Assembly (NCBI GenBank): GCA_964247055.1
Contig: OZ176050.1
Location: 4,836,001-4,900,000 of the forward strand
Length of the DNA: 64,000 bases
DNA from: Paragordius varius
Lineage: Eukaryota; Animalia; Nematomorpha
Reading direction: 5' to 3'
Shown: piece after piece, positions 1,916 to 63,841 of the stretch
How positions within the stretch are numbered: position 1 is the first letter of the stretch
Layout of the letters: each line of letters opens with the position of its first letter
Notes under the pieces: model-generated
Told to the model about the DNA's origin: nothing
Database searches by the model: none
What the model saw: the letters and a program-made list of their open reading frames with translations, nothing else
Translations under genes and position numbers: made by a program

Positions 1916-4900
1916 TTAGTCAAGTTTGTAAAGTCGAACTATGATTTGAGGTAAGGAGACATTATTATTTAAGCAATTATTATTGTTTGTAATATAACTA
2001 GGGTCATCTTTGTGTGTCGTAGCTGGTGTCATATTGGCCGTTTGTCGAGCAAACACATTGCTATCTGGTTGAATCATAATGTGTGCATAGTAACGAGAGG
2101 CATCCACCATATGTTGAACGACTGTATCATTCAACAAAACAGCAATGTAATTTTCACCCTTCCACGAATCCGGAAACGTGGTATTGTAACACAATCCTCC
2201 TGGATTAACAATTTTAAGCGATTGTACCGTTCCAACGGATTCTGAATTGATTAGTTGCCCGAAATCGCTTTGAGTTGTATTATGGTTTTGGATTAAAGAT
2301 CCCTCTGAAGAATTACTCTTAACTTCTGCCGATGGCCCGCTTAATTCTAAGCATCCTTTACTAGGAGGTACTATAGAGTTGTCATTGGTATCGGATTGTT
2401 GAGCAACTATTTCGGTTCCTAGAACCCGAACCATCAAAATTATTTTGAGATTCGATGGGGGCGAAATGTTTTGAGACGATGAGGCATATGTCCCATCTTC
2501 CGTACTACTCCCTGGAGTATATAATTGTTGATTATCAGTCGTCGGTGAATTTAGTTCAGCACCAATATTTACATCATTCGCTGTAGTATTTGGATAGCAC
2601 TGTTTCAAAATTTGTGGGAAAGCATGACAAAGCTTTTCACACAATTCCCGGTAGTTGAGTTCATACAAGTACATGAGATGAAAGATTGGTTCAGTTGACC
2701 CCACATCGTCAGTGTTGCTTGACCCATCATTGACATCATCGAATAACTTAATGTTTCATTAATTAACAACGATAACGTTATGATATTGATATATAAATAT
2801 ATGTATGTTTATTTTTAACTGAAATGTAACAATGGGAAGAAAATTTAGAGAATAGTAGATTAAGAAATGATTTTAAGTATTAAGCATTTTAATTCCTTTT
2901 AACTTATATATTTGTATAAAAAATATCTATACCTCAAATGATGTTGAAGTTAAATCTGGCATGGAATGAGTGTCACAAGAACCAATATTTTTTTCGCTTC
3001 GCATATCATCGGCTCCTGGCCAACATAATCTACAAAATTTATGAATATTTATGAATTATATGATCTTTTAATGCACTCAATAATTAATTCTAATATTTGT
3101 AAAATTGTTAAACATACAATATAAGTAATAGGGTATTTAACCTATCCCTTTATGTAATATGACAATGTTTTTTTAGAATAATTTGTCAATGTAATGCATT
3201 ACCTTATGTGATTGCTAATAAATGCAGGAGTAAGCAAAGTTTTAGGAATCCGACGCGTGATATACAAAGTCAATCTTGGCCGGGCTGGTATACACTGCAG
3301 GGCGTTATTGAGACGTATACCATCCGCAACGCCACAAATATCAATTAAATCTTGACGTGAAAGTCGACGCATATCAAGAGCCGAAAAATCTTTAAAACAA
3401 TTTATGATGAAGGGGCTAAATGCATGACTTTCCAACCAAGCCGCTGTGTCACTACTATGAGTGCTATGATTGTTATAAAATGCCGATCGATAGCCATTAT
3501 TAGCATGATGCGATTGGGTGGTATGAAAAATTTGTTGGATACTCTGGGTAAAATTGGTGTAATACGGATTCGCTACGTCTTTATTTAATGCAGTATTTGA
3601 TGGTATGTTGAAGCTTGGTTGATGATTATAGGTATGAGCAAAATGGTAATGGTTGCCATTAGTTGGTCCATGTGTATCATTGTAAAATGTAATGTCTTCG
3701 TGTTCCACGAGTGGTGAAGGTCCATTGACTCCACTAGAACCCGTCTCTATGAATCCGGTTGCTGCCACGCCACCACCAAGCTCATAAGCGGTTAAACTAA
3801 ATTGGGAAGATGTGTCTTCCAAAAATAAATTCCCAATGTTAGATTGAAAAGTTGCGTTACCACCACCATGTGGAGCAGACGATTGTGATGGAAATGTTTT
3901 CAAGGTTGGAGTTGTAAGTGAAAAGGAATTGATTGAAGTACTACCAATGTGATTGATATTTAAATTATTATTGGTACTTATTATACCAGCATTACTATTT
4001 GCTGGTTGAGCATTTAATGATTCAAAGGTGGATGTTATCATTTGAACCTGATTATTGAAACCAGTAACGCTGCTGGAATTCGATGTAAACGATAAGGATT
4101 GGGATTCTCCACCATACCGTTTTTTAGTAATTTGTTGAGTTTTAACCGATTGTTTAGCAACCGAAGATGATATAGTTTGGCCTCCTGATACACTACTAAG
4201 ACTTTTTCCGGTAAAATTTTCATTTAATCCGGTATATTTCGCATCTCCAAAATTGTTTGCATTTGCCATACCATTCTTAGCGGACAAGTTTGAAGAAAGA
4301 GCTTTTTCAAAGGTGTCATCTTCATCACACGTTGTATCATCGATTTCTCGGCGTTTTTCAGGCAAAGATTTATTGATTGTCGAGGCAGAATTGGCATTCA
4401 GTTGAAGTAATTTGGATACGTTTGGTTTTGTGTGGTCGTCATCTTCATCATCAGCCAGAGTGTGATATAATTTGTAATTGCTTAAAGTAGCGGACATAAG
4501 TGAAGATGTTGGTAAGGTTCCCATCGTTTTGTGAAACAATTTCGGTTTGGCTGCTTTAATGATCCGTTTGTTGGGGGATATGGATTGAATTGTAGTTGCA
4601 ATTACATTATTACTAATATTATTGTTAGTACTAGCATGGAATAGTTGGGATTGATTTTGTACCTGCATTTGGGACTTATTATTATTGTTTAGGGTAGGAT
4701 GAGGTGTTGGGTAAAACACATTATTATAATCGAAAATTCCACTTGATTGATTGGGTATATAGGAAGGGGGATTTAAATTAGCATTCGTAAATTTTGCGAT
4801 TGTTTGTACATCAGTATGGGAATTAACGAAACTGTAAGATATATTATTATTTCTATCTATTACAGTTTGTGGTGTCTGATCACCTGAAGAAGCAGTGTCC

Positions 4901-5763
4901 GATGTCAAAACGGCAGTCAAACACATATAATCAGCATTATTTGTATTTTCCGATAAAACTGTAAATGGACATGAAGGTTGGTATTTAAATTTATCGTTTG
5001 GGAGTTGCTTTTCAAATTTTTCACGATCAGTTTTATGTTTACGATCGGCGCCTTTGGGTTTAAATATCTTTACTTGACACCCGGCTGAATAAATTAATTT
5101 AAATTGCCCATCTTCTAAAGCATATGTTTCAGTTTGAAGTCTAAATGGCACACCCTTTTCCCCACCATGTTTTTTGGGAGTGAATTCAGTACTTATACAA
5201 TTAATTTTTATGTATAAACTGGCCGTTTTAAATGGGTCCCAAGAAACTTCGACTAGATTAAGATTATAGGGCAAATTTTTGGCATCTATTATACCCCGAG
5301 ATAAAGGGGTATCGACTTCTAGTATCCGCTCAGCCGGATGTTCGGATCTCCAAAGTGATATTTGTTTATCCTCACAATACAGCAAGCGTCTATCATGAAA
5401 CGTAACTTTTACATAACTTTTAAGTAAGGTAGTTTTTTTAGTTATACCATTTCCAAAACATTGAAATTTTAGTTCATAAGGTTGCCCCTGATTTAAATAA
5501 GTTAAGGATTCTTCTTCAACTTTCATGGCAGGCGATGTAGGGGCATTTAGTATAACACTTATAACTTGATCTGATTGCGATGATCCCGGTTGATTATGTG
5601 CTTCAACATGGCCTCTGTGATCACCATCGAAAAGCGGTAAAGCCATTAGAGTATCGGTAATGTTGAAATTTGAGTTATCAATTTTAATGCACAAACCCGA
5701 TAAAGAATCATCCAAATGCTCATTTATGACATGGTCAACTGCATTATTCCATAGAATTGACAT
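1916..5763 (-). CDS. TFCP2: LSF/CP2-family transcription factor (TFCP2/UBP1/gemini-like), 3 exons: 5763-3203, 3029-2933, 2746-1916; about 1162 aa
   Basis: CP2 DNA-binding domain (LTYLNQGQPYE, INCISTEFTPKKHGGEKGVPFRLQ, QVKIFKPKGADRKHKTDREK). LSF-type SAM domain (FSALDMRRLSRQDLIDICGVADGIRLNNAL). C-terminal motifs FHLMYLYELNYRELCEKL and IAVLLNDTVVQHM. Both GT-AG introns keep the reading frame. Confidence 0.9.
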
Positions 5764-5888: not shown

Positions 5889-8800
5889 ATGGGCAAATCG
5901 TCCAAAGACAAGCGTGATATTTTTTATCGGTTAGCAAAGGAGGAGGGATGGAGAGCCAGAAGCGCATTTAAATTGTTGCAGATTAATGAAAAATATAAAG
6001 TTTTGGAAAATGTTAATTATGTTGTAGATCTATGCGCTGCACCTGGTAAAATTTATATTATATTTAATTATTAAATATCTACATTTGCTTAATATGTTCA
6101 TATAAAATAAGTGTTTTTTTAGGTAGTTGGAGTCAGGTATTGGCAAAATATTTGGATCCAGTAACACATACAAATCGGAAAATTGTTGCTGTAGATTTGC
6201 AAGATATGGCCCCCATACCTGGTGTAACACAATTAAAAGGTATTTTGTGCCAATGTAACTGTATTTTAGGCGATATAACTAGTGCCGAAACTGTCCTAAA
6301 TATTTTAGAGTTATTTGTTGATCAAAAGGCTGATCTCATTATTTGTGATGGAGCTCCTGATGTTACTGGCTTCCATGATATGGATGAATATATTCAACAC
6401 CAACTTTTGATATCAGCACTTAATATAACGTTGCATTTACTAAAAACCGGGGGGAATTTTGTTGCCAAAATATTTCGTTCAGGGGAATGTGACATTATAT
6501 ACCGAAAGATTCGGCGGTATTTTGAACATGTAATTCGATTTATTTATAATGCGTTTTAATAAAACAATTTTTTAAATAAACCGTAATAATATTTTATACT
6601 AATTTTAAAATTTTTGTAAATTTAGGTAACTTTTGTTAAACCGTCCTCCAGCCGAACTAGTAGTGTGGAAGCTTTTGTCGTCTGCCAAAATCTTTTGCCG
6701 TTTGATATGGATATTGGAACTGAATTACATGGGCGCGATAAACTATTAGACCTTGTTTCAAGATTTGACCAAGAGATAAGCATCGATCCAGATCCAGTAA
6801 AGTTTTTATGTTAATTTTAATCGCAAAAATATAAAAGGCTCATTGATTTAAGACCGCTTAACTGTAATGATAAATTTAGTGGGTTAACGAAGATTAATTG
6901 GTAATAAATTAAGTGGGTGACGACGATGGGTTGTTAAAAAAGATTCGTGTTAACGTCATGAATAATGAAAGAAAATAAAATAAATTTATTATAGACTCAA
7001 ATTTTCGCCCAATGGCATCATCATCAGGAAAGAAAAAATTTTTAAAATGAAAGTAAATGTGAGACAAATCAATACATATAAATTGATACAATAGACAAAG
7101 GAAAGTAACATAAAAGAAACCGTTATAATCTTGAGCGCATGTGCAATATAATTTAATAAGAACATAAATATATATACATTATCAGACAAATAAAACAGAA
7201 ATTATCAAAAATAAAAAAAATTTCCAAGTAATATCAATGCTGTATAAAGTTTTTGGAATAAAAATATTACGGCTTTTTATGAAAATTTTGGTTTGAGGGT
7301 GAATTTCTCTTTTTTCTTCTCGCCTATTTAAAAGGTCATGTTCAAAGCTCTGTATGAATAAGGCTTCCTTTGTCAGTCTAGACTTGAGTTTCTTCTCTAT
7401 TCCCAAGATATCTATTGTTGTAGAACAACAGTGATCATTGTCAAAGCAATGTAAGAACATTGCTGAATTCTTGCATCTTACATGTTCTTTGTACCTCAAT
7501 TTGATGTCACGTTTGACTGACCTATATATTTGGCAGGACAGTCTCTACAATTCAATCTGTATATTGTGTTTTCCAGCTCGACATCGCGAGTTCTCAACAT
7601 AGTGAGAACGTTCGCAGTAGGTTTGTAGTAAACCTTTAAATTCTTTTTCCTTTTTAAAATTTTGCCTAGGCTGGCAGAAAATCCGCTGTATGGAAGGCAA
7701 ACATTACGAACAATTGGGATACAGGTAGATGATTGCGATTCATTTGTATGACAAGTGATCGGTGTTGCAGTGTCTCTGTGTCATTAATAGGATTGATCGA
7801 TGCTGATGTATTTTTGTTTTTTAGGACTGCGTTAACGGCAGACGTGATCCATTCCTGGTGGTAACCCTGGCGTAGCAGATATTGCACGACTTCACCTGTC
7901 TGTTTTATCTGCATTTCTAATGTGTTTGGTAGAAGGAGTGTACGCTTTATGTAGCTAGATACTATGGCTTTGTAGGTGGATGGCGGGTGATTAGATTCCA
8001 AAGACAGGAAGCTGAAATTAAATAATTTTTTATAATGGACTTTGGTGGTTTTGGATATCTGGTTGTCATTGCGAATTTTAGATATGACAATGTCTAAAAA
8101 AGGTATTGAGTTGTCGATTTCCTCTTCTTTTGTGAATTTTATTCCGATTCGTTGTTTAGCGCTATAAATAATTAATTTTGGTTAATTTCTGAATCTATTA
8201 TTAAGATGTCATCAACATATCTCTTGTAAAATTTTATTTCGTTGTTCGCCAAAACGCTTTTCTCAATGTGTTGGAGGCACAATTCACCTATGACTTAAGA
8301 GAAACTGCTACCCATAGGGGTTCCGTTTTATTTGTAATATTCACCTTTAAAGGAGAAATAGTTGTTGCGCAAAACTGTTTGGATTAAGAGGATGCATGAA
8401 CTGATGTGGAGATGCTTTTCAAAATAGTCTCTATGTTTGTAAACGAATTCCTTTAGAATATTTTCTGCCCAGAAGAGGTATAGTCGTGTATAGTGATGTT
8501 ACATCAAACGATGATAATTTATCCTCCTCTGTTATCATTAAGTTCCGAATTTTTTGTGTCAGATCAAATAAATTTTTAACACCGTGTATATAATTGCCTA
8601 GTAAGGGGTTGAATAATTTTGTTAGAAATTTACTTATATTATAGGTTGGAGCTGTTCTATAATCAACTATTGGCCTTAACGGATTGGAAGGCTTGTGAAT
8701 TTTAGGATTAGCGTAAAACTTAGGACATTTTTGTGAATGGGGGACCAACCTTTTGTAAGTACTATCATCAAGGTGTTGTTTACTCTTTATATTTTTTAAT

Positions 8801-11800
8801 AATTTCGTTTTTTGGTCAATTGTTTTTTGAGTAGGGTTTTGATTTAACCGAGTATATGTGAGTTCGTCTGAAAGCATTTCTTTTACGTTCTTTTCGTAAT
8901 CAGTTGTGTTCATAGCTACTATAAATTTGCCCTTGTCTGCTTTGGCAAACATGACGTCCTTATATGTTTTTAACGTTTTAATAATTTTAATGTCTTCTTT
9001 GTTACTGTTGGGTTTGACATGTATGGTGCGTTTCAATGTTTTGTATAAATCGTTTCTAGTTTGGTCGTCGTTCTGGTCCAAAACGTCTTCAAATATTGTT
9101 ACGAATTCTCTGGTATTGACTCTGGTTACTGGTGCATGTTTCGGTTCTTTGTTAAGCAGATCCACCTCGTTAGGAGAAAAAGATTTCGAAGATAGGTTTA
9201 TGAAGTTTTTGTGTGTGTTTTCTGGTATGATGTGTTTATTATTATTTCTTAATAGTTCTCTAAACTTCTTATCGTGTCTTTTTTCTGTTTCGTACTTAAT
9301 TTTTTCACAATTATCTTCAACTTCATTGTTTACGTTGTACTTTTCTATAGGGCTCAAATTTTTTAACCATCCTTCAAGCTTTGATAACTGATTTTTTATC
9401 TCCTGTATGCTTTTAATTTTATTGTGGATCAACGTTTTTAATAAGTTTAAAGAATAATTCAAGTTGATTTTATTTGCGTTAGGGATATGTTTCCCTGTAG
9501 GAGAGATTAAGAACTTTGGAATTACTTTGTATTTCAAACAGTTTTGGAGAAACCGCAAGTCTAACTCAAACTTTACGAGCTTTTTATTATAAAAATTGTA
9601 ATTTTGACTTATAACGCACATTCAAATTGCTCTTCTAAAACAACTGAGGATAAAAATAGAAAATAAAGATGTCGGTAAAGAAATATAGTAAAATTTTTGG
9701 TATAAGTTGAGTGGGTGACGACGAAGTGTTGTTAAATAAAGGAAAAAGAATTTAAAGGTTTACTACAAACCTACTGCGAACTTTCTCACTATGTTGAGAA
9801 CTCGCGATGTCGAGCTGGAAAACACAATATACAGATTGAATTGTAGTGACTGTCCTGCCAAATATATAGGTCAGTCAAACGTGACATCAAATTGAGGTAC
9901 AAAGAACATGTAAGATGCAAGAATTCAGCAATGTTCTTACATTGCTTTGACAATGATCACTGTTGTTCTACAACAATAGATATCTTGGGAATAGAGAAGA
10001 AACTCAAGTCTAGACTGACAAAGGAAGCCTTATTCATACAGAGCTTTGAACATGACCTTTTAAATAGGCGAGAAGAAAAAAGAGAAATTCACCCTCAAAC
10101 CAAAATTTTCATAAAAAGCCGTAATATTTTTATTCCAAAAACTTTATACAGCATTGATATTACTTGGAAATTTTTTTTATTTTTGATAATTTCTGTTTTA
10201 TTTGTCTGATAATGTATATATATTTATGTTCTTATTAAATTATATTGCACATGCGCTCAAGATTATAACGGTTTCTTTTATGTTACTTTCCTTTGTCTAT
10301 TGTATCAATTTATATGTATTGATTTGTCTCACATTTAATTTCATTTTAAAAAATTTTCTTTTAACAACTCCTGATGATGCCATTGGGCGAAAATTTGAGT
10401 CTATAATAAATTTATTTTTATTTTCTTTCATTATTCACGACGTTAACACGAATCTTATTAATTGGTAATATTATAATAAATGTAAATTAATCGATTAGCT
10501 TGTAGAAGGATGTTAATAAATTAACGCGTTTTTAAATTTGGTTTGACATATGTTTTTTATGTCAAAATGTCTTGAAAAGGTTGTATTTATCTTACAAACC
10601 TTGGCATCCTTTTTATATCCCCAATAAAAAAACCCAAGCGCTTACAATGTTGTCTATATCCACAGAACAATATATAAGTTGTGGTGGGGGCAAGAAACTT
10701 TGAATCCGCAGCTTTATCTTTACCTACCTACTTTAAATTTCTGTTAATGTCAAAGAAAATGCTAGCATCACTTTTTAGTTTAAAACATGACGGCGTTTTT
10801 TCCTATAGTTTTTACTCATAAAAAAATTAGACTGAATTTTAAGTAAGTTTAAATAGTTGTGTGAGAAATAAGGCACTACAACGCAATTTTTCGATTTTTG
10901 TCAAATTTAAAAATATGGACATAATAGCGTCATAAAAAATAAATATAATATGAACTACAATTAAATCACAAATTGATAGTATTAGAAACAACCAAGGAAT
11001 TCCAAAACTAAATTCTCCAGAAAACAGAATCATCAAAAATTCTGACATAAGATGTTTAAACTATAAAAAACTCACAGACGACGCGCAGAAAACAGCTAAA
11101 TTTAAATCATCCATAACTGAAAAATTAAAAAAAACTTTACTCTCAAACCCAACTTGGGAAAATTTAAAAAACACTTACATCCATACAGTTGAATGCCTGG
11201 TGGGGAGGAAAAAATCAAAAAAGGTCATCAAAAAAAATATCAATTTTGGTGGAATAATAAAGTGAAAGAGCATATAAAACAGAAAAATTTGGCACATAAA
11301 ATTTGGTTCAAGGAAAAGACACCATTAAATAGAAAATTATATCTAGAATCCAAAAGTTTATGTCGAAAAATTATCAGAAATGCTAAAAATGAGGAAGCGC
11401 TAAAGTATGCGAAAGAAATCGATATTAAAACTAAAAACAAAACTGTATATAAATGGGCTAAAAGCAATAATAATAATAAAACATCCGCACCAAAATCAGT
11501 GAGATTAAACAATACAATAATAAATGATCCAGCTATTGTTAAAAACACCTATCTTACCTACTTCTCGGAAATTTTAAACCTAAACAACCCCATCACGACT
11601 CCTATTACATCAACACCTACTCAAAGCTGTGCCGAAAACCTAACTGAATCAGATATCCATACCGCTTTATGCAAAATGAAAAATAAAAAACTTCCTGGCC
11701 CTTCAGAACTCACGGCCGACATGCTTAAACTAACTGACCCTCAGATTATCGATTCATATCTGACAACTTTATTCAACAATATAATAAAAGACGAAAAAAT

Positions 11801-14078
11801 CCCTCCTGACTGGGAAAACAGCCATATCATTCCCATATACAAAAAAGGAGACCCTCTGCTGCCGAAATCCTACCGTCCAATAAAGTTATTAGATCACACT
11901 ATGAAAATATATGAAAAAGTAATTCTCTCCAAAATCCTGCCCAAATTGCATTTAAACGAAATGCAATGCGGGTTCCGGCCAAATAAAAGTACAATAGATG
12001 CCATATTCACGCTAAGACAACTTCAAAGCGCATACATCAAAAAATCTCCTTTATACTACGCTTTTCTTGACAAGCCTTTGATGCCATTCCAAGAGATCTT
12101 ATACCATGGGCTCTTAGGCGTCAAGGCATTGACGAATGGTTGATAACCTCAATAATGCTCTTATACCGTAATACCAGAGCCCAAATCAAAACCCCGTTTG
12201 GACTAAGTAAAAGTTTTTCAATAAAAAATGGACTCCACCAAGGATCCATATTAAGCCCAACCCTCTTCAATGTCATTATGGAAGAAATAACTAAAGACAT
12301 CACAACCGGCATGCCACACCAAATTCTTTACGCCGATGACCTCGTAATATCATCGACATCGGAAAGCGATCTCATAGGGAAAATTCGTCTGTGGAATGAC
12401 ACCTTAAAAAGCTATGGTGTCAAAGTCAATTTTTCAAAAACCAAATTAATGTACGATAATCTCACCGCAAAAAACCCATGCAGCCTATGCAGAAAAGAAG
12501 TTAAATCAAATTCTGTACGCTGCAATTCTTGTCTTCTATGGGTACACAAAAAATGTAGTAGCCTCAAATCTATAAATGATTACGATAAACACTACAAATG
12601 CTCGGCATGTTTAAATAATAATATTAATTTAACAATCAACTCGATTCCCAATCCTTTCAATATGGAAACAGTGAGCAGTTTTTGCTACTTGGGCGATATG
12701 ATATCAGCCGGTGGAGGAATAGAACCTGCAATTAAGCATCGCATATCACAAATGTGGAAAAAATACCATTCGTTAAAATTAATAATAAATTATAAATTCG
12801 TCAAACAACAAACTAAATGTGCCATTTACACTACAGCCATTCGTTGCGTCCTCACATACGGAACCGAATCCTGGCCGATATTAAAAATAAAATCTAAACT
12901 CATAAACGCTGAATCCAAATTATTGAAAACAATATTATTCGCACACAATCCTTCTAAATTCAATTATACCAAATCCATAAACCCGTACCATACACTCAAT
13001 CTCAACCCCGTCAACAACGTCATCAGAAATCTCCGGTTACAATGGGCTGGACATGTTGAAAGACGGCAAGATACTCACATTCTTAAAACTATGAAAAATT
13101 ACTCGGTTGAACTACCAGCAAAATCCGGCCGACACCACATGGCTCAACACAATAACTAAAGACCTCGAATCGCTTAATTTAAATCTAGAATTAGCCAGAT
13201 CAAGAGAAGAGTGGAAAAAACGGGTGTACCGTCATTTAATGGCGAATCCCCATACAAATGAATGACGATGATGAATGATATTATGTAGACCGAGGTATCC
13301 AAAATAAATAACTTTACGACCGCATTTCTATATTTTATTTAAATTAAAACATGGGACTGTAAAATGTAAACACAATATAACATTTTAATCTAATTCATTA
13401 TCATTCGATAGAAATATTCAGAAAAATTGGTAAAAAATATTAATATTACTCAGATTTTAGCATTTTTAAATTTTAGATTTCCCAAGGGCTCCATGTTGGA
13501 CCCGCCTAATGTAAACAGTTTAGCGATGCATTTTTTGTACAAAAATTTTTTGCGCATAACTTGCAATAAGAGCCTTATTTAAAAATGTTTTAACCGCCTT
13601 TCATGTTTCATATCGCGATTTTGAATAAAATTCTGGCAAATAGCTGTCTAAATAAATATATTATGAATAAATCGAGTTTTAATTAGGAGTTATGTCTCAA
13701 TCGTGTGTATATTAATGTGTCTCAAACAATGTCGTATCATATATATTTTTTAATTATAACTATTTACAATTATTTTAGCAATAAATAATTGTATAAGTGT
13801 TTAAAAAATATATTTATTAATTTTATAATAGTAAATCAATTAATCATATTATTGTTGTATATAAGCTATGATGTTTACAGCTTTTTACATTAAATATTAA
13901 ATATAGATTGCCTAATTACTTTATAAAATTTTTAATATAATTTTTTATTATTGTTATATTTAGGTTAAAAACTTCCCTAATCGAACCATTATACCTTTTG
14001 ATATATGTCCAGATTTAAGTGGCTTTAATCTTGATTCCGATACAAGTTATCCTTTAGAAGTATGATTTTTGCAATACA

Positions 14079-23084: not shown

Positions 23085-24450
23085 TTTATGTTAAAATAAT
23101 AATTTGTATTCTCGTAAAATTTATTGAATTCAGACTATATCCAAAATTTTCGATACATGAGAGTATCTTTTTCAATGGATTAACTAAAATAAAAGAAAAT
23201 AATAATAAGATTAATTAAAACAAAATTTGAAAAATATAATTATAAATTATGATAACATAAAAAATGCAAAGTGGTGTGCATGTGTTATTGTTTTTTCCTT
23301 GGTGTGGTAAATATTTTGAAATAGTCTGTTTCTTTTAGGAAGTCTTTTGTGACTTTGTTAAGATCTTTCCTCTCTTCTCTTCTGTTGATGAGGTGTGTAA
23401 TGTTTGAATGGATGAAACAAGCCTCCAAAATCAACCTATCGGATAATTTGTCGGCTTGTGCTACAATGGATGCTGGGCCGAAGGTGTGACCTGTATTGTG
23501 GCAATGGTCATAGATGGCCGAACCTTTTCTGTTGTGTTCTTTTTCTCTAATATTTATAGGGCGTTTAGATTGTCCAATATAGTGTGCTGGACAATCATTA
23601 CATCTTTTGTGGTAGACTGTACATTCGTTTTTTGGTTCTCGGCGTGGTCTTAACAAACTTAATAAATTCTTTGGTGGTTTGTAATAAACACGTACATCCT
23701 TTTTTGTAATAATATTGTTAACTTTTTTGGATGTATTGTTATAAGTCAGGCAAATACATTTTTCGGGCGGATTTTGTTTTTCTCTTGGGTTTAATATATT
23801 GTTTATTGAATCTGTTATCCAATGCTTTTTATAACCTTGATCAAGTAATATGGTTACGATTTCTGATGTTTGAGATGTTCGTACCTTTATGTCATTTGGT
23901 AATTTAAGCGTTCTTTTTAGAAACGCGTTTGTTATGGCTTTGTAAGTTGCTACTGGATGGTTAGACGTAATGGATAAAAATTGGTAAGAGAAAAGTTCTT
24001 TATAATGGACTTGTATGGATATACTATTGATTCTACGGGTAAGATTGAGGTCTAAAAAGTTGATACTGTTGTTCTTTTCTTCCTCTATTGTTAGTTTTAA
24101 CTCGGATATTTTGTTGATAATGTTTTGAAAAACTTTTATATTGTCAATGGTGTCGATGATTAAAATATCATCCACATAACGGGTATAGAAGTTTGGACGA
24201 AATTTTTCAAAAGCCTGTTGCTCAATTAGTCTCATGCAAACTTCACCAATGATTGAACTAAATGGTGAACCCATTGGAGTCCCGCGAATTTGCTTATAGA
24301 AACTATCATTAAACATAAAATAAGTATTATGCAGCGCAATATTTATTAGGGATTGAAGCGCACTTCGATGGATCTGGCTGTTAAAATAATCTATGTTATC
24401 ATTAATTGTTTTGTTTAACGCCTGAAACGCTAATTCAATTTATATAACTA
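23085..24450 (-). mobile_element. Second Penelope-like element (different subfamily), 5'-truncated
   Basis: ORF 24316-23285 with [34 protein letters not shown] and GIY-YIG (TVYHKRCNDCPAHYIGQSKR..REKEH..LILEACFI). Degraded RT continues to about 24450. Boundaries approximate. Confidence 0.9.
23139..23180 (-). ncRNA. Hammerhead-ribozyme-like fold with decayed core in the 3' region of the second Penelope
   Basis: ATCCA - TTGAAAA - A - GATAC TCTCAT GTATC - GAA - AATT - T - TGGAT. Same architecture as 10367-10400; the core has two substitutions versus CTGANGA. Confidence 0.6.
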
Positions 24451-46921: not shown

Positions 46922-49900
46922 TTAATTTGTTAAGTTATCGTTTTGATAGTAAGAATAATTTGGGTTAGGTAAGGATGAATGGGGATGATAATCAAGATAT
47001 ATCATATTTTTTGGATTGCTATAATTGGAAAAAATATTTTTTGGAGGCATGCTGGTGACACAACACTTTTTTCGTGAAATTGGGTTACTTTTTGGATTCT
47101 CGTATTCTTTCAAGGCATATTCAATTGCTCTTCCTGTCTCATAATGTAAAAATGTATCATCAGAGGGGTATTGGCATAAGGGCAGGGATTCAGTTTCTTG
47201 CTTCATATCAGGCGAATCACTAGAATGTTCGGACAGAGTGGGTGACCGTTCATTTGATGGACTGCTGTTGCTGTTTATATTACTGGCTGTGTGACAACTC
47301 TGACTTTGACGGCCAGATTCGTATGAAAAACTATTTTCCTTATTATCAGTATTTGTAATATGTTTCTGTTGTTGATGACCAACATGAAGAGTAGTATAGT
47401 TATAATTAATGCCATTGTTGTTTGTTGGATGATTAGGTATGTGGTGTCTGAAATGAACAGTGTTGTTATGGTGAGCAAATACAAATTGTTTTTCCGTTGA
47501 AGAACAGACGGAGGGTGTATCTAGAGAAACTCCTAAATCTTGATATTCCTACAAATATGAAAAGATAAATCTCTGTTGAAGCTAAAATTAGATTTGTGTT
47601 ATATTATAAAATCGTATGTTGGTGTAATTCATTTTTTAATTTTTGGTATTGTGATTACTTTTATGCTTAAAATTTTTATTATGCTACAAGATCAATATTG
47701 TAAAAATCTCTGATTAATGACTTTTGTCTTGCGTTAAGTAAGTTATATAAAAATTCAAAAATCAAATTTTACCACATTGAGCGTTGAAACCAAGATTCGA
47801 TTAAGGATTTGAGTCAATTTAGAAAAATCTGGTCGTGCTTCCGGAAACGCTTCCCAACATCGCATCATCACTCCATATCTGTGAAATATATATATTTTTT
47901 TACATTTTATTCATAAATAATATTTCACCCGAAAAATCTTATTTTAAAAACAAAGGGTAATATTTGAAGAAAGTTTACATTTCTTGGGGACAATTTTGTG
48001 GGCATTTAAGACGCTGTCCAGCTTTCAGAAAATCAAACAATCCCTCGACTGGTAAACTTGGATAGGGTGTTCCACCTAATGTCATAATTTCCCACAACAC
48101 GATTCCAAAGGACCAACTATGGTTCATAATTATAAAAAAGTTTTACAATAAATTTAGTGAATTTTCTACATTTAAATTTCATATAGTTAAAATGGTAATA
48201 TATATTAATAATTTTTTATTACATCTCAACTGGAATATTAACATTCTTTTTACATTTATGTGACCCGCTTCTATCAAATAAGCTTTAATCGATTTATAAC
48301 GTTTTTATAAAAGATAGCGACATTTTAGCGAATGACTTTAAATATCGTCACAAAAAAACTTACACATCGCTTTTAATGGTGTATTTTCGATCGAATAATG
48401 ATTCAGGCGCCATCCATTTTACTGGAAGTCGACCGTCCGTTGTCTTTTTATAGTAATCGTTCATGGCTAAATCTCGGGCTAAACCAAAATCAGCAATTTT
48501 GATCACGCCATCCTTGGTGAGAAGAATATTTCTGGCTGCTAAATCTCGATGTATGCACTATAAATTTGTATAAGTACAAATTATATTTGTTAAAAATGAT
48601 ATCAATCTTTGTTATTTATAAAAATAGATAAAAATTGGAACTAATTGATTTACTAGTAATGAATATATGATATAAAACAAATATATTTATGATTGAATAA
48701 GGTAACAACCGTTTTTATTCACCATATTTATACCATCAATTTACCTTTCGTGATGCCAAATAATCCATTCCTTGAGCAATTTGAACGGCAAAATTTACCA
48801 GATTTTTAGTTGACAGATGTGGGGTCGTCGAGGCTTCAATTTGTTTTTCTTGATTTATTTCTTTGGCCTTTACACTTTTCTCTGATGTGCAGAGCGATGT
48901 ATTATGACTTCCAGGGTTAGTGCTTTGGGTATTTGTATTGGAAGATGGGGAATATGTACTTTTAACTTGTTCGTATTGTGATTCGCGATTTTTTCGTAAA
49001 AAATCCCGTAGATTGCCTAACGATGCCATTTCGACTACCACATAAATGGGTCCTACAAATTATAAAACAATTGTAAAGGCTAATATAAGTGCCAAATAAG
49101 CCTAAAAATTTATTAAATTAACCGAATCTTTTAAGAGTTATTTTATCAAAATCAAGGGGCAAATATTTTAGAAAAACGTTCTGTATATGTATCTAAGTAT
49201 TTACATTCAATGGCCCTATTAGTATAAACAAACATTGAGAAATTTTATTAAATGGCAGTAAATCATTTTTTTTCGTATTCTTACATTAATACAAAGCATT
49301 GATTTTCCAAAATATAAGGCAGTGTGGGGAATAAAATACTCAAATTCTATCCCATACACCTCTAGAGAAACCTAAAACTCTTTTATAAGGTTAAGGGTAT
49401 ACAAGATAAATTAATTGAATATTACCCCCAATGCTAGTGCAACATCCAATCAAATTAATAATATTTTTGTGATGTCCAATAATTTTCATGACTTCCAGCT
49501 CAGAAACCAGATCTGCCAGCTCACGGTCTCCGGCATTGTCTTTAAGCATTTTAACGGCTACTTGTTTGGAGAATAGAATCGGAGGATATTGATTTAAATG
49601 CCGCTCCTCTGCATCTAATTGATGGTCTGGACTTTGAGTTGGAGGAATTTCGTGTTGCAGAAGGGATTCGAAAACGATCCCAAAAGCTCCTTCACCAATC
49701 TTACTTCCAAGTTTCAAACTGTTTTAATTAAACATATAGATTAATTATGATGAGTATATTTTATAAATGTTTGAAATTTTTTAAAGGTGCAAAAATCAAG
49801 CTGTAGTTATGAAAGATTTTTCAATTTATTCAAAAGATTTACCATTCTCTGGGTATTTCCCATCGATCGTCATACACCATAGAATAGTCTGTCCAGAGAC

Positions 49901-62392: not shown

Positions 62393-62999
62393 ATGTTCGT
62401 CATGGATCAGAGCATGGTATCTTTGGACTTTGATATTTTTGAACCATGTGAAGCCGATTTTGATGGATTATATCTGAATTTAACCAAAGTTATTTTTATT
62501 TGTAAGTTAGATTTTGAAAAATGATGCTGAAAAATTTTGTAAAACTTTACTGCAACAACGAAATACGTCCTACCTCATTAAAGTATAAAATAAAAATTAA
62601 AATAGTCAGCCAATGTGAATGTAAATGATGCCGAAGATAACTTTGTATTTGGTCTAATGTCGTTTATAAAAGATGATCAAGTATAATTTTTTATTATAAT
62701 AGTGTTTATCTGCTGATATACTAATTTTAGATTGTTTGTTTAACGATTCTAAAGATTTTGATTGGAAAGCTCACCTGAAGAATTCCTATCTATTTTTAAA
62801 TGACAGGATCGTTGATCTTCCTTATCAAATTTTACCTCCATTATATGAAAATATTGCGTTAGATTTTTTTGCGAATGTCAAATTTCGTTATCTATTATGC
62901 CTAACAAGGGTAATCATTTATGAGAATGAATCAATTGAATGGGTTTGCCCGGATATGAAATATTTTTTTCAGGTTTTACATAGTTTGGCTACAAATTAA
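62393..62999 (+). CDS. BCCIP: BCCIP/BCP1 homologue, exons 62393-62488, 62511-62582, 62606-62680, 62703-onward (3' end unresolved)
   Basis: VSLDFDIFEPCEADFDGL, KTLLQQRNTSYLIK, DNFVFGLMSF, LFLNDRIVDLPYQILPPLYENI and FRYLLCL align with BCCIP motifs (VNIEFE, DYDGI, LLIQQN..SVIK, EVFGFIS, SERFINVPPQI). Confidence 0.8.
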
Positions 63000-63110
63000 G
63001 CGCTACTAGCTTTAAAATATTTATAAATAACATTTTTTATATTTGATATATATTCTCTAATTACTGGCTATTTAAAAGATAAATATAAATATCACATAAA
63101 TAATACGATT

Positions 63111-63147
<37 letters not shown>

Positions 63148-63841
63148 AAAATTATTATGAGTCAACTGCAGAAATACCCTAATACCTAAATCATGTATCT
63201 AGGTTGAATATATTTTTATGTATGGCCTTCAAAATTTTTTTTAAATAGTCCAATAATGCGGCGATATTTTGCACACTAATTGAAAATTCATTTTATCATC
63301 TTTATTCGAATACCTATATTAGTATCCGCTAAGGATAACCAAAACCGTTTTTGTAGAACCGGAACGATAAATTATAAAAACGATTGCTAAAAATAAATTT
63401 TTTTACTTTTTATGTGAATTTTAATTAATATTTTTTGGATTTTAATATTGTCAGACAAGTTTTTGTGCGGCAAAAAATGGTTTGAATCAAAAATAAAATC
63501 TAAAATAAGAACAATAAACATTTATTAAAAATTTTAATAAGCTAGCATTTTTTTGCAAAAGATATTAACTTTAAACATTTTGCCCTATTCTTTTGGGTTT
63601 TAACTGGTACCAGCAAATTTATAGCGGGTAATTAAATTATAAAATTGATTAAAATTATTATTATGGGAACAAAAAACCTCCAAGATATATGTAAATTAAT
63701 GTGCAAAATAAAATTTCAAAAAAGTTATTTTTTCTCCAGAGTCAAAACTAACTCTCTACAAAAAAATCGAAGTCACAAAATAATTTTTTGAATCTTTTTT
63801 AAAAATCATATTTTTATACGCCATTTACGTATATCCCATAG

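Follow-up and report, generated by a model that had tools for sequence, protein, structure and literature searches.

A BCCIP gene with three probable introns of 22-23 nt

Positions 62393-62999 (forward strand) of the window (i.e., the whole stretch of 64,000 nt analyzed here, from contig OZ176050.1 of the hairworm Paragordius varius) very likely hold a single-copy BCCIP gene with three spliced introns of 22, 23, and 22 nt, as judged from its reading frames, its profile alignments and the structure of other genes in the same assembly. On the same grounds, this gene is a probable instance of a real and unusual class of introns (hereafter micro-introns), which recurs across several contigs of the 44-contig assembly, in numerous genes unrelated to each other.

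Once the three segments are excised, four open pieces form one 179-codon frame (Table 1). Retention of the first intron leads to a stop after 11 codons, and retention of the second or the third to a stop after a single codon. The frames of the two middle exons are open exactly from splice site to splice site, and the third intron carries TATAAT directly ahead of its terminal AG. An earlier reading of this DNA, made from the letters only (hereafter the sequence-only reading), had proposed the same segments, and its coordinates, lengths (22, 23, and 22 nt) and sequence strings all proved exact on re-reading. One correction concerns the start codon, as 62402 is the second in-frame ATG of exon 1, the first one being 62393. 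The sequence-only reading had also stated that the BCCIP-like pieces join in frame only if all three segments are removed. Their removal does give an open frame, but the word "only" was too strong, as removing a single 214-nt GT-AG segment (62489-62702, which joins 62488 to 62703) or skipping either middle exon also stays in frame, because all junctions are in phase 0.

At its C-terminus, the predicted product is short, the frame stopping at around position 169-190 of the 205 positions of the family profile, and no further BCCIP exon was seen 3' of the stop codon (window 62997-63400). A (TA)n microsatellite lies at window 63113-63146, ~115 nt 3' of this stop codon.

Table 1. Predicted structure of the BCCIP gene (window coordinates) and micro-introns in other genes of the assembly.
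Feature	Position	Strand	Length	Characteristics
BCCIP exon 1	62393..62488	+	32 codons	from first in-frame ATG; open frame
BCCIP micro-intron 1	62489..62510	+	22 nt	GT..TAG, phase 0, 18% GC
BCCIP exon 2	62511..62582	+	24 codons (72 nt)	frame open exactly from splice site to splice site
BCCIP micro-intron 2	62583..62605	+	23 nt	GT..TAG, phase 0, 9% GC
BCCIP exon 3	62606..62680	+	25 codons (75 nt)	frame open exactly from splice site to splice site
BCCIP micro-intron 3	62681..62702	+	22 nt	GT..TAG, phase 0, 9% GC
BCCIP exon 4	62703..62999	+	98 codons + TAA	stop codon at 62997-62999
BiP-type HSP70, first micro-intron	locus on contig C4 (C4:12482291-12482573)		23 nt	GT..TAG, after the GIDLGTTYS codons; Hsp70 profile resumes at 13
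BiP-type HSP70, second micro-intron (same locus)			28 nt	between Hsp70 profile positions 87 and 93
Fucosidase gene	200 kb adjoining the window		25 nt	between profile positions 108 and 110
Erv1/Alr gene	200 kb adjoining the window		21 nt	between profile positions 48 and 51
MraW-type methylase gene	200 kb adjoining the window		25 nt	between profile positions 128 and 131
LCAT-like gene	200 kb adjoining the window		31, 23, 25, 26 nt	four introns in a row
CCT6-like gene			23, 23 nt	gene starts with two introns around a 21-codon exon
CCT4-like gene			25, 26 nt	gene starts with two introns around an exon of 17 full codons
Another CCT gene			24 nt	first intron
Assembly positions of micro-introns	contigs C4:3727702-3727811, C1:9887284-9887387, C6:5287869-5287892, C1:4960630-4961109			

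Family assignment and copy number

Pfam was scanned exon by exon (24,736 families). Exon 4 matched the BCCIP family (PF13862) with an E-value of 7.1e-6 and a score of 26.3 bits, its residues 23-76 falling on profile positions 109-169. Alone, this exon is 0.7 bit below the gathering cut-off of the family (27 bits); exon 4 together with its same-frame neighbours scored 27.3 bits in a six-frame search of the assembly. The sole Pfam hit of exon 1 was also BCCIP (E = 0.16 over all 24,736 families, 12.1 bits), with residues 5-23 (reading from 62402) aligned to profile positions 1-19, i.e., in the expected N-terminal place. The BCCIP assignment made in the sequence-only reading holds at the level of the family, through the PF13862 profile order of exons 1 and 4. 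A PDB search with exon 4 gave yeast Bcp1 (7c4h) at E = 0.18.

Exons 2 and 3 lie between these two alignments. The six-frame PF13862 alignment enters at profile position 35 (base 62523), which is inside exon 2 and where collinearity from exon 1 predicts position ~30. The 89 profile positions between 19 and 109 would have 77 residues to cover them with exons 2 and 3 included, and 28 residues otherwise. Searched one by one, neither exon 2 nor exon 3 had a relevant match in Pfam or PDB, which is not surprising for stretches of 24-25 residues in a divergent protein; homology of these two exons to the family is suggested by length and collinearity only.

A six-frame profile search found one PF13862 locus in the 110.6-Mb assembly, and neither a second DNA copy of BCCIP nor a retrocopy was detected in these 110.6 Mb, the locus itself being the only match. 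Outside this genome, exon 4 had zero matches in an exhaustive search against 1.84 billion proteins, a word search with this exon gave no candidate relative, and the ESM Atlas held no meaningful neighbour. Compared to BCCIP and yeast Bcp1 (PF13862; 7c4h), the predicted hairworm protein is alike in the collinear placement of exons 1 and 4 on profile positions 1-19 and 109-169, and differs in being very divergent (26.3 bits), 179 residues long, and terminated before the end of the profile.

Three micro-introns or one ordinary intron

We searched 62489-62702 exhaustively for parses with at most four excised GT..AG segments (15-40 nt each), and exactly one was stop-free and in frame across the interval, namely the three introns described above. 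When the 214 nt were shuffled with their dinucleotides preserved, an in-frame parse was obtained in 14 of 3000 cases (0.5%) and in 45 of 1720 genomic control segments (2.6%), the latter being GC-matched GT..AG segments of 205-225 nt with stops in all frames. The same control on the reversed genome was similar in outcome, with an in-frame parse in 58 of 2679 segments (2.2%). Taken by itself, the unique parse set against these chance controls (0.5-2.6%) is moderate evidence.

These controls bear on the main rival explanation, in which 62489-62702 would be one ordinary GT-AG intron of 214 nt and the middle exons chance open stretches (or, in variants of the same idea, one middle exon would be real, or the two would be cassette exons that are sometimes skipped). 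Such an intron would join in frame with all junctions in phase 0, would have a common size for this genome (9 of the 55 introns estimated below measure 100-300 nt), and would agree with exons 2 and 3 having no Pfam or PDB match of their own. It would, however, leave only 28 residues for 89 BCCIP profile positions, and it would require the full micro-intron parse to have arisen by chance, as happened in just 0.5-2.6% of controls, in a genome where the same 5' layout has Pfam support in an LCAT-like and a CCT6-like gene (see below). We consider this explanation quite unlikely.

Base composition is a poor discriminator between the two. The three BCCIP introns pooled have a GC content of 11.9% vs. 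29.9% for exons 2 and 3 (Fisher p = 0.0055); ordinary long introns have a mean GC content of 24.8%, and 18% of intron windows equal or exceed the GC content of these two exons, so that the contrast between BCCIP exons 2 and 3 and ordinary long introns is weak evidence.

Micro-introns in other genes

Beyond BCCIP, BiP, LCAT-like, fucosidase, Erv1, MraW and three CCT genes together contain another 14 GT-AG introns with lengths of 21-31 nt (Table 1), nine of which have contiguous Pfam coordinates across both flanks. The third intron of the BiP-type HSP70 gene, after its two micro-introns, measures ~69 nt. In the LCAT-like gene, profile positions 5-24, 27-60, and 66-97 are covered by exons of 51, 39, and 32 codons, respectively, and positions 102-250 by the exon that follows, i.e., the junctions are contiguous (24/27, 60/66, and 97/102). 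The 21-codon exon of the CCT6-like gene covers positions 18-38 of the Cpn60_TCP1 profile and the next exon starts from position 39 (38/39); in all three CCT genes, the end of a micro-intron is the exact start of a Pfam match. As far as these profile alignments indicate, the layout predicted for BCCIP (micro-introns in a row near the start of the gene, with exons of ~20-25 codons between them) is documented elsewhere in the genome. The sequence-only reading had proposed a class of ~22-nt introns beside longer ones, and these 14 independent introns, with nine bracketed by Pfam matches, give support to that proposal.

Part of these introns came from a screen of the window and 200 kb, which yielded 17 candidates, 12 of them tested with Pfam or by reading. 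Four of the 17 candidates were confirmed by Pfam matches on their flanks, and for five of the 17 the flanks were without Pfam match. The 31-nt LCAT candidate, whose flanks had no match at E<=0.01, was retained from reading the sequence. A candidate in a PP1 gene turned out to be a 79-nt intron, and a 31-nt candidate after a kinase exon at window 49403-49723 (reverse strand), of which only the upstream flank matches, is probably false. This exon itself encodes the first part of a protein kinase domain (positions 1-75 of the PK_Tyr_Ser-Thr profile, E = 6.3e-12). We also attempted a homology-free spectrum of intron lengths in the window and 200 kb, based on open-frame joining and codon-usage log-odds, and gave it up: GT-AG pairs were not commoner than control dinucleotide pairs (38 vs. 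29-33), and the codon-usage model barely separates exons. This spectrum is uninformative because chance open frames swamp the signal in a genome of 27.7% GC.

The recurrence of the class also weighs on the two remaining explanations of the BCCIP locus. If the locus were a decaying pseudogene, the three segments would be insertions or frameshift lesions resembling introns, and the strong divergence and short C-terminus of the protein would fit such decay. BCCIP/Bcp1 is, however, an essential ribosome-biogenesis chaperone, and the decaying copy would be the sole BCCIP locus in the genome, with no intact parent copy beside it; moreover, all four pieces remain open, and decay is not expected to generate three lesions that are each GT..TAG, in phase 0 and of the size of the class. 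A pseudogene is highly improbable in our view. Handling of the segments outside the spliceosome (DNA elimination like that of ciliate IES, or translational bypass) or an assembly artefact, with no direct point in favour, is scarcely credible against GT..AG ends in 17 of 17 introns, TAG in 15 of 17, and recurrence in many unrelated genes on several contigs.

Sequence features and putative splicing route

Features of the class were compiled from 17 introns, i.e., the three of BCCIP and the 14 comparison introns, with lengths of 21-31 nt and, for the 14 comparison introns, a mean GC content of 16%. All 17 start with GT and end with AG. The donor is reduced to GTW (GT then A or T), with a G at position +5 in one intron of 17, and the acceptor is TAG in 15. 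The U12-type donor [AG]TATCCTT was found in none of the 17 (12 checked by script and five by eye). Most micro-introns have A residues 3-10 nt ahead of their 3' end. A pyrimidine tract is absent and would have no space; in the three BCCIP introns, pyrimidines make up 20-60% of the 10 nt that precede the final TAG. The motif T(T/A)TAAT is present in six of the 17 introns, compared to ~3 expected from composition by a hand estimate, and among the BCCIP introns only in the third; it is a tendency at best. Lengths divisible by 3 occur twice among the 17 introns, both times in the comparison set; the screen was biased against introns of such lengths.

These features suggest how the preferred reading, that of three spliced micro-introns, may operate. 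The BCCIP pre-mRNA would contain three U2-type GT-AG introns, with two coding exons (24 and 25 codons) between them, and would yield a 179-residue product. The introns would be removed by the major spliceosome through intron definition, using a minimal GTW donor, a TAG acceptor, and a branch A located only some bases ahead of the AG. A route of this kind has been proposed for tiny introns of myxozoans, Dicyema and Stentor from their conserved U2 snRNA and U2AF (PMC13644364, PMC9505925).

Micro-introns within the intron landscape of the genome

To place the class in the genome, we used 55 introns of CCT, HSP70 and proteasome genes, whose lengths were estimated from the gaps that separate collinear Pfam matches. 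Their median was ~458 nt (about 460 nt), one of the 55 estimates was below 35 nt, and none fell in the range of 29-66 nt. This set gives too low a share of micro-introns, as small 5' exons are invisible to an exon-wise Pfam search. Ordinary introns read directly from the sequence measured 62, 69-79, and ~115-130 nt.

All micro-introns whose position could be judged, a set that leaves out the MraW intron, fall within the ~first 150 codons of their gene, often as introns 1 and 2, and the later introns of these genes range from 62 nt up to several kb. In animals, it is usually the first intron that is longest, and the 5' bias of micro-introns runs against this pattern. One could speculate that the introns of 21-31 nt form a separate cap-proximal class, i.e., a second, lower length optimum in an otherwise long-intron animal genome, which would occur in the ~first 150 codons of genes only and be recognized by a dedicated mode (e.g., a cap-complex-assisted, U2AF-independent intron definition with the branch A nearly touching the AG). 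We hold this as a tentative idea, and would rather bet against it in this complete form.

Mitochondrial contig and other features of the window

Contig C44 of the assembly is the mitochondrial genome, and its COX1 gene contains six in-frame TGA codons, read as Trp. A COX1 fragment of this contig is 76-79% identical to many database COX1 sequences. Myxozoan and dicyemid mitochondria are very divergent, and the level of identity seen here would speak against a mitochondrial genome of either group. The contig carries hairpins that lack a spacer and have arm lengths of 131 and 97 nt, the 97-nt one inside an open reading frame whose start resembles ATP6. Long, perfect, zero-spacer palindromes within coding sequences are known from Nematomorpha mitochondrial genes (Mikhailov et al., 2019, PMC6649704), and the hairpins of C44 match this trait. 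Upstream of COX1, C44:6752-7451 holds a tandem array in which a palindromic unit of ~50 nt recurs every 72 nt; this array shares the open frame of COX1 under the mitochondrial code.

Within the window, positions 3202-5763 (reverse strand) form an uninterrupted frame of 854 codons for a transcription factor of CP2/grainyhead type (Pfam E = 1.5e-53) that carries a SAM domain at its C-terminus (Pfam E = 4.3e-11), and an intron is absent from that part of the gene. Reverse-transcriptase fragments (RVT_1) are located at 11193-13156 (forward strand) and 23288-24316 (reverse strand); the former is split over two frames at ~12140 and is probably a decayed retroelement. Near-identical stretches of ~45 nt at 7522-7548 (reverse strand) and 9843-9869 (forward strand) are inverted and lie ~2.3 kb from each other on either side of several open frames, and may be the terminal inverted repeats of a mobile element.

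Implications and comparison with known tiny introns

If RNA confirms these introns, hairworms would become the third animal lineage with introns <30 bp, and as far as we found the first in Ecdysozoa. Tiny introns would in this case not be the product of a genome-wide compaction, and would instead represent a discrete, 5'-biased class beside introns of hundreds to thousands of bases, such that a single nucleus could show what a spliceosome needs to process 22 nt. The literature searched contained no published link between hairworms and intron size, and the word "intron" is absent from two hairworm genome preprints.

A practical consequence concerns annotation. Standard aligners and gene finders apply a minimum intron length of 20-40 nt, and gene predictors or read mappers run at their default minimum intron size would frameshift genes such as BCCIP. 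This may contribute to the low BUSCO completeness of hairworm genomes (71.6% in the Gordionus montsenyensis preprint, where nuclear GC is 26.9%; nuclear GC is 27.7% here). Were the cap-proximal class true, a sizeable share of hairworm gene models would be broken, and part of the "missing" universal genes could be an artefact.

Among 51 metazoan genomes, introns <30 bp were reported only from Myxobolidae and Dicyema japonicum, where they are the genome-wide norm (Hadjez et al., 2026, PMC13644364). The median intron of myxobolids is 22-27 bp in that study (September 2026), which expects further animal lineages with introns <30 bp and whose main text has no mention of nematomorphs; the mean intron of Dicyema is 38 bp (Lu et al., 2019, PMC6736024). 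The micro-introns described here are similar to both in being animal GT-AG introns of <30 nt, with motifs reduced to about GTa...AG, no pyrimidine tract and a few A residues upstream of the AG, in hosts that are parasitic. In contrast to these lineages, in which a tiny size is the norm, the hairworm median is ~460 nt, far from a median of <40 nt, and the tiny introns would constitute a minority class at the 5' ends of genes, in a genome that contains transposon fragments.

Two other systems offer partial parallels. Ciliate introns (~25 nt in Paramecium, 15-16 nt in Stentor; PMC5014332, PMC9505925) have similar lengths and are AT-rich, and are intron-defined and removed by a conventional spliceosome; however, ciliates are unicellular and nearly all of their introns are tiny, and ciliates have a documented deficit of 3n introns that is linked to NMD. 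Human "ultra-short" introns of 43-65 nt, and the short introns that depend on SPF45 (PMC4463651; bioRxiv 10.1101/784868), are likewise a minority class with truncated pyrimidine tracts in a long-intron genome, but exceed the hairworm micro-introns two- to threefold in length.
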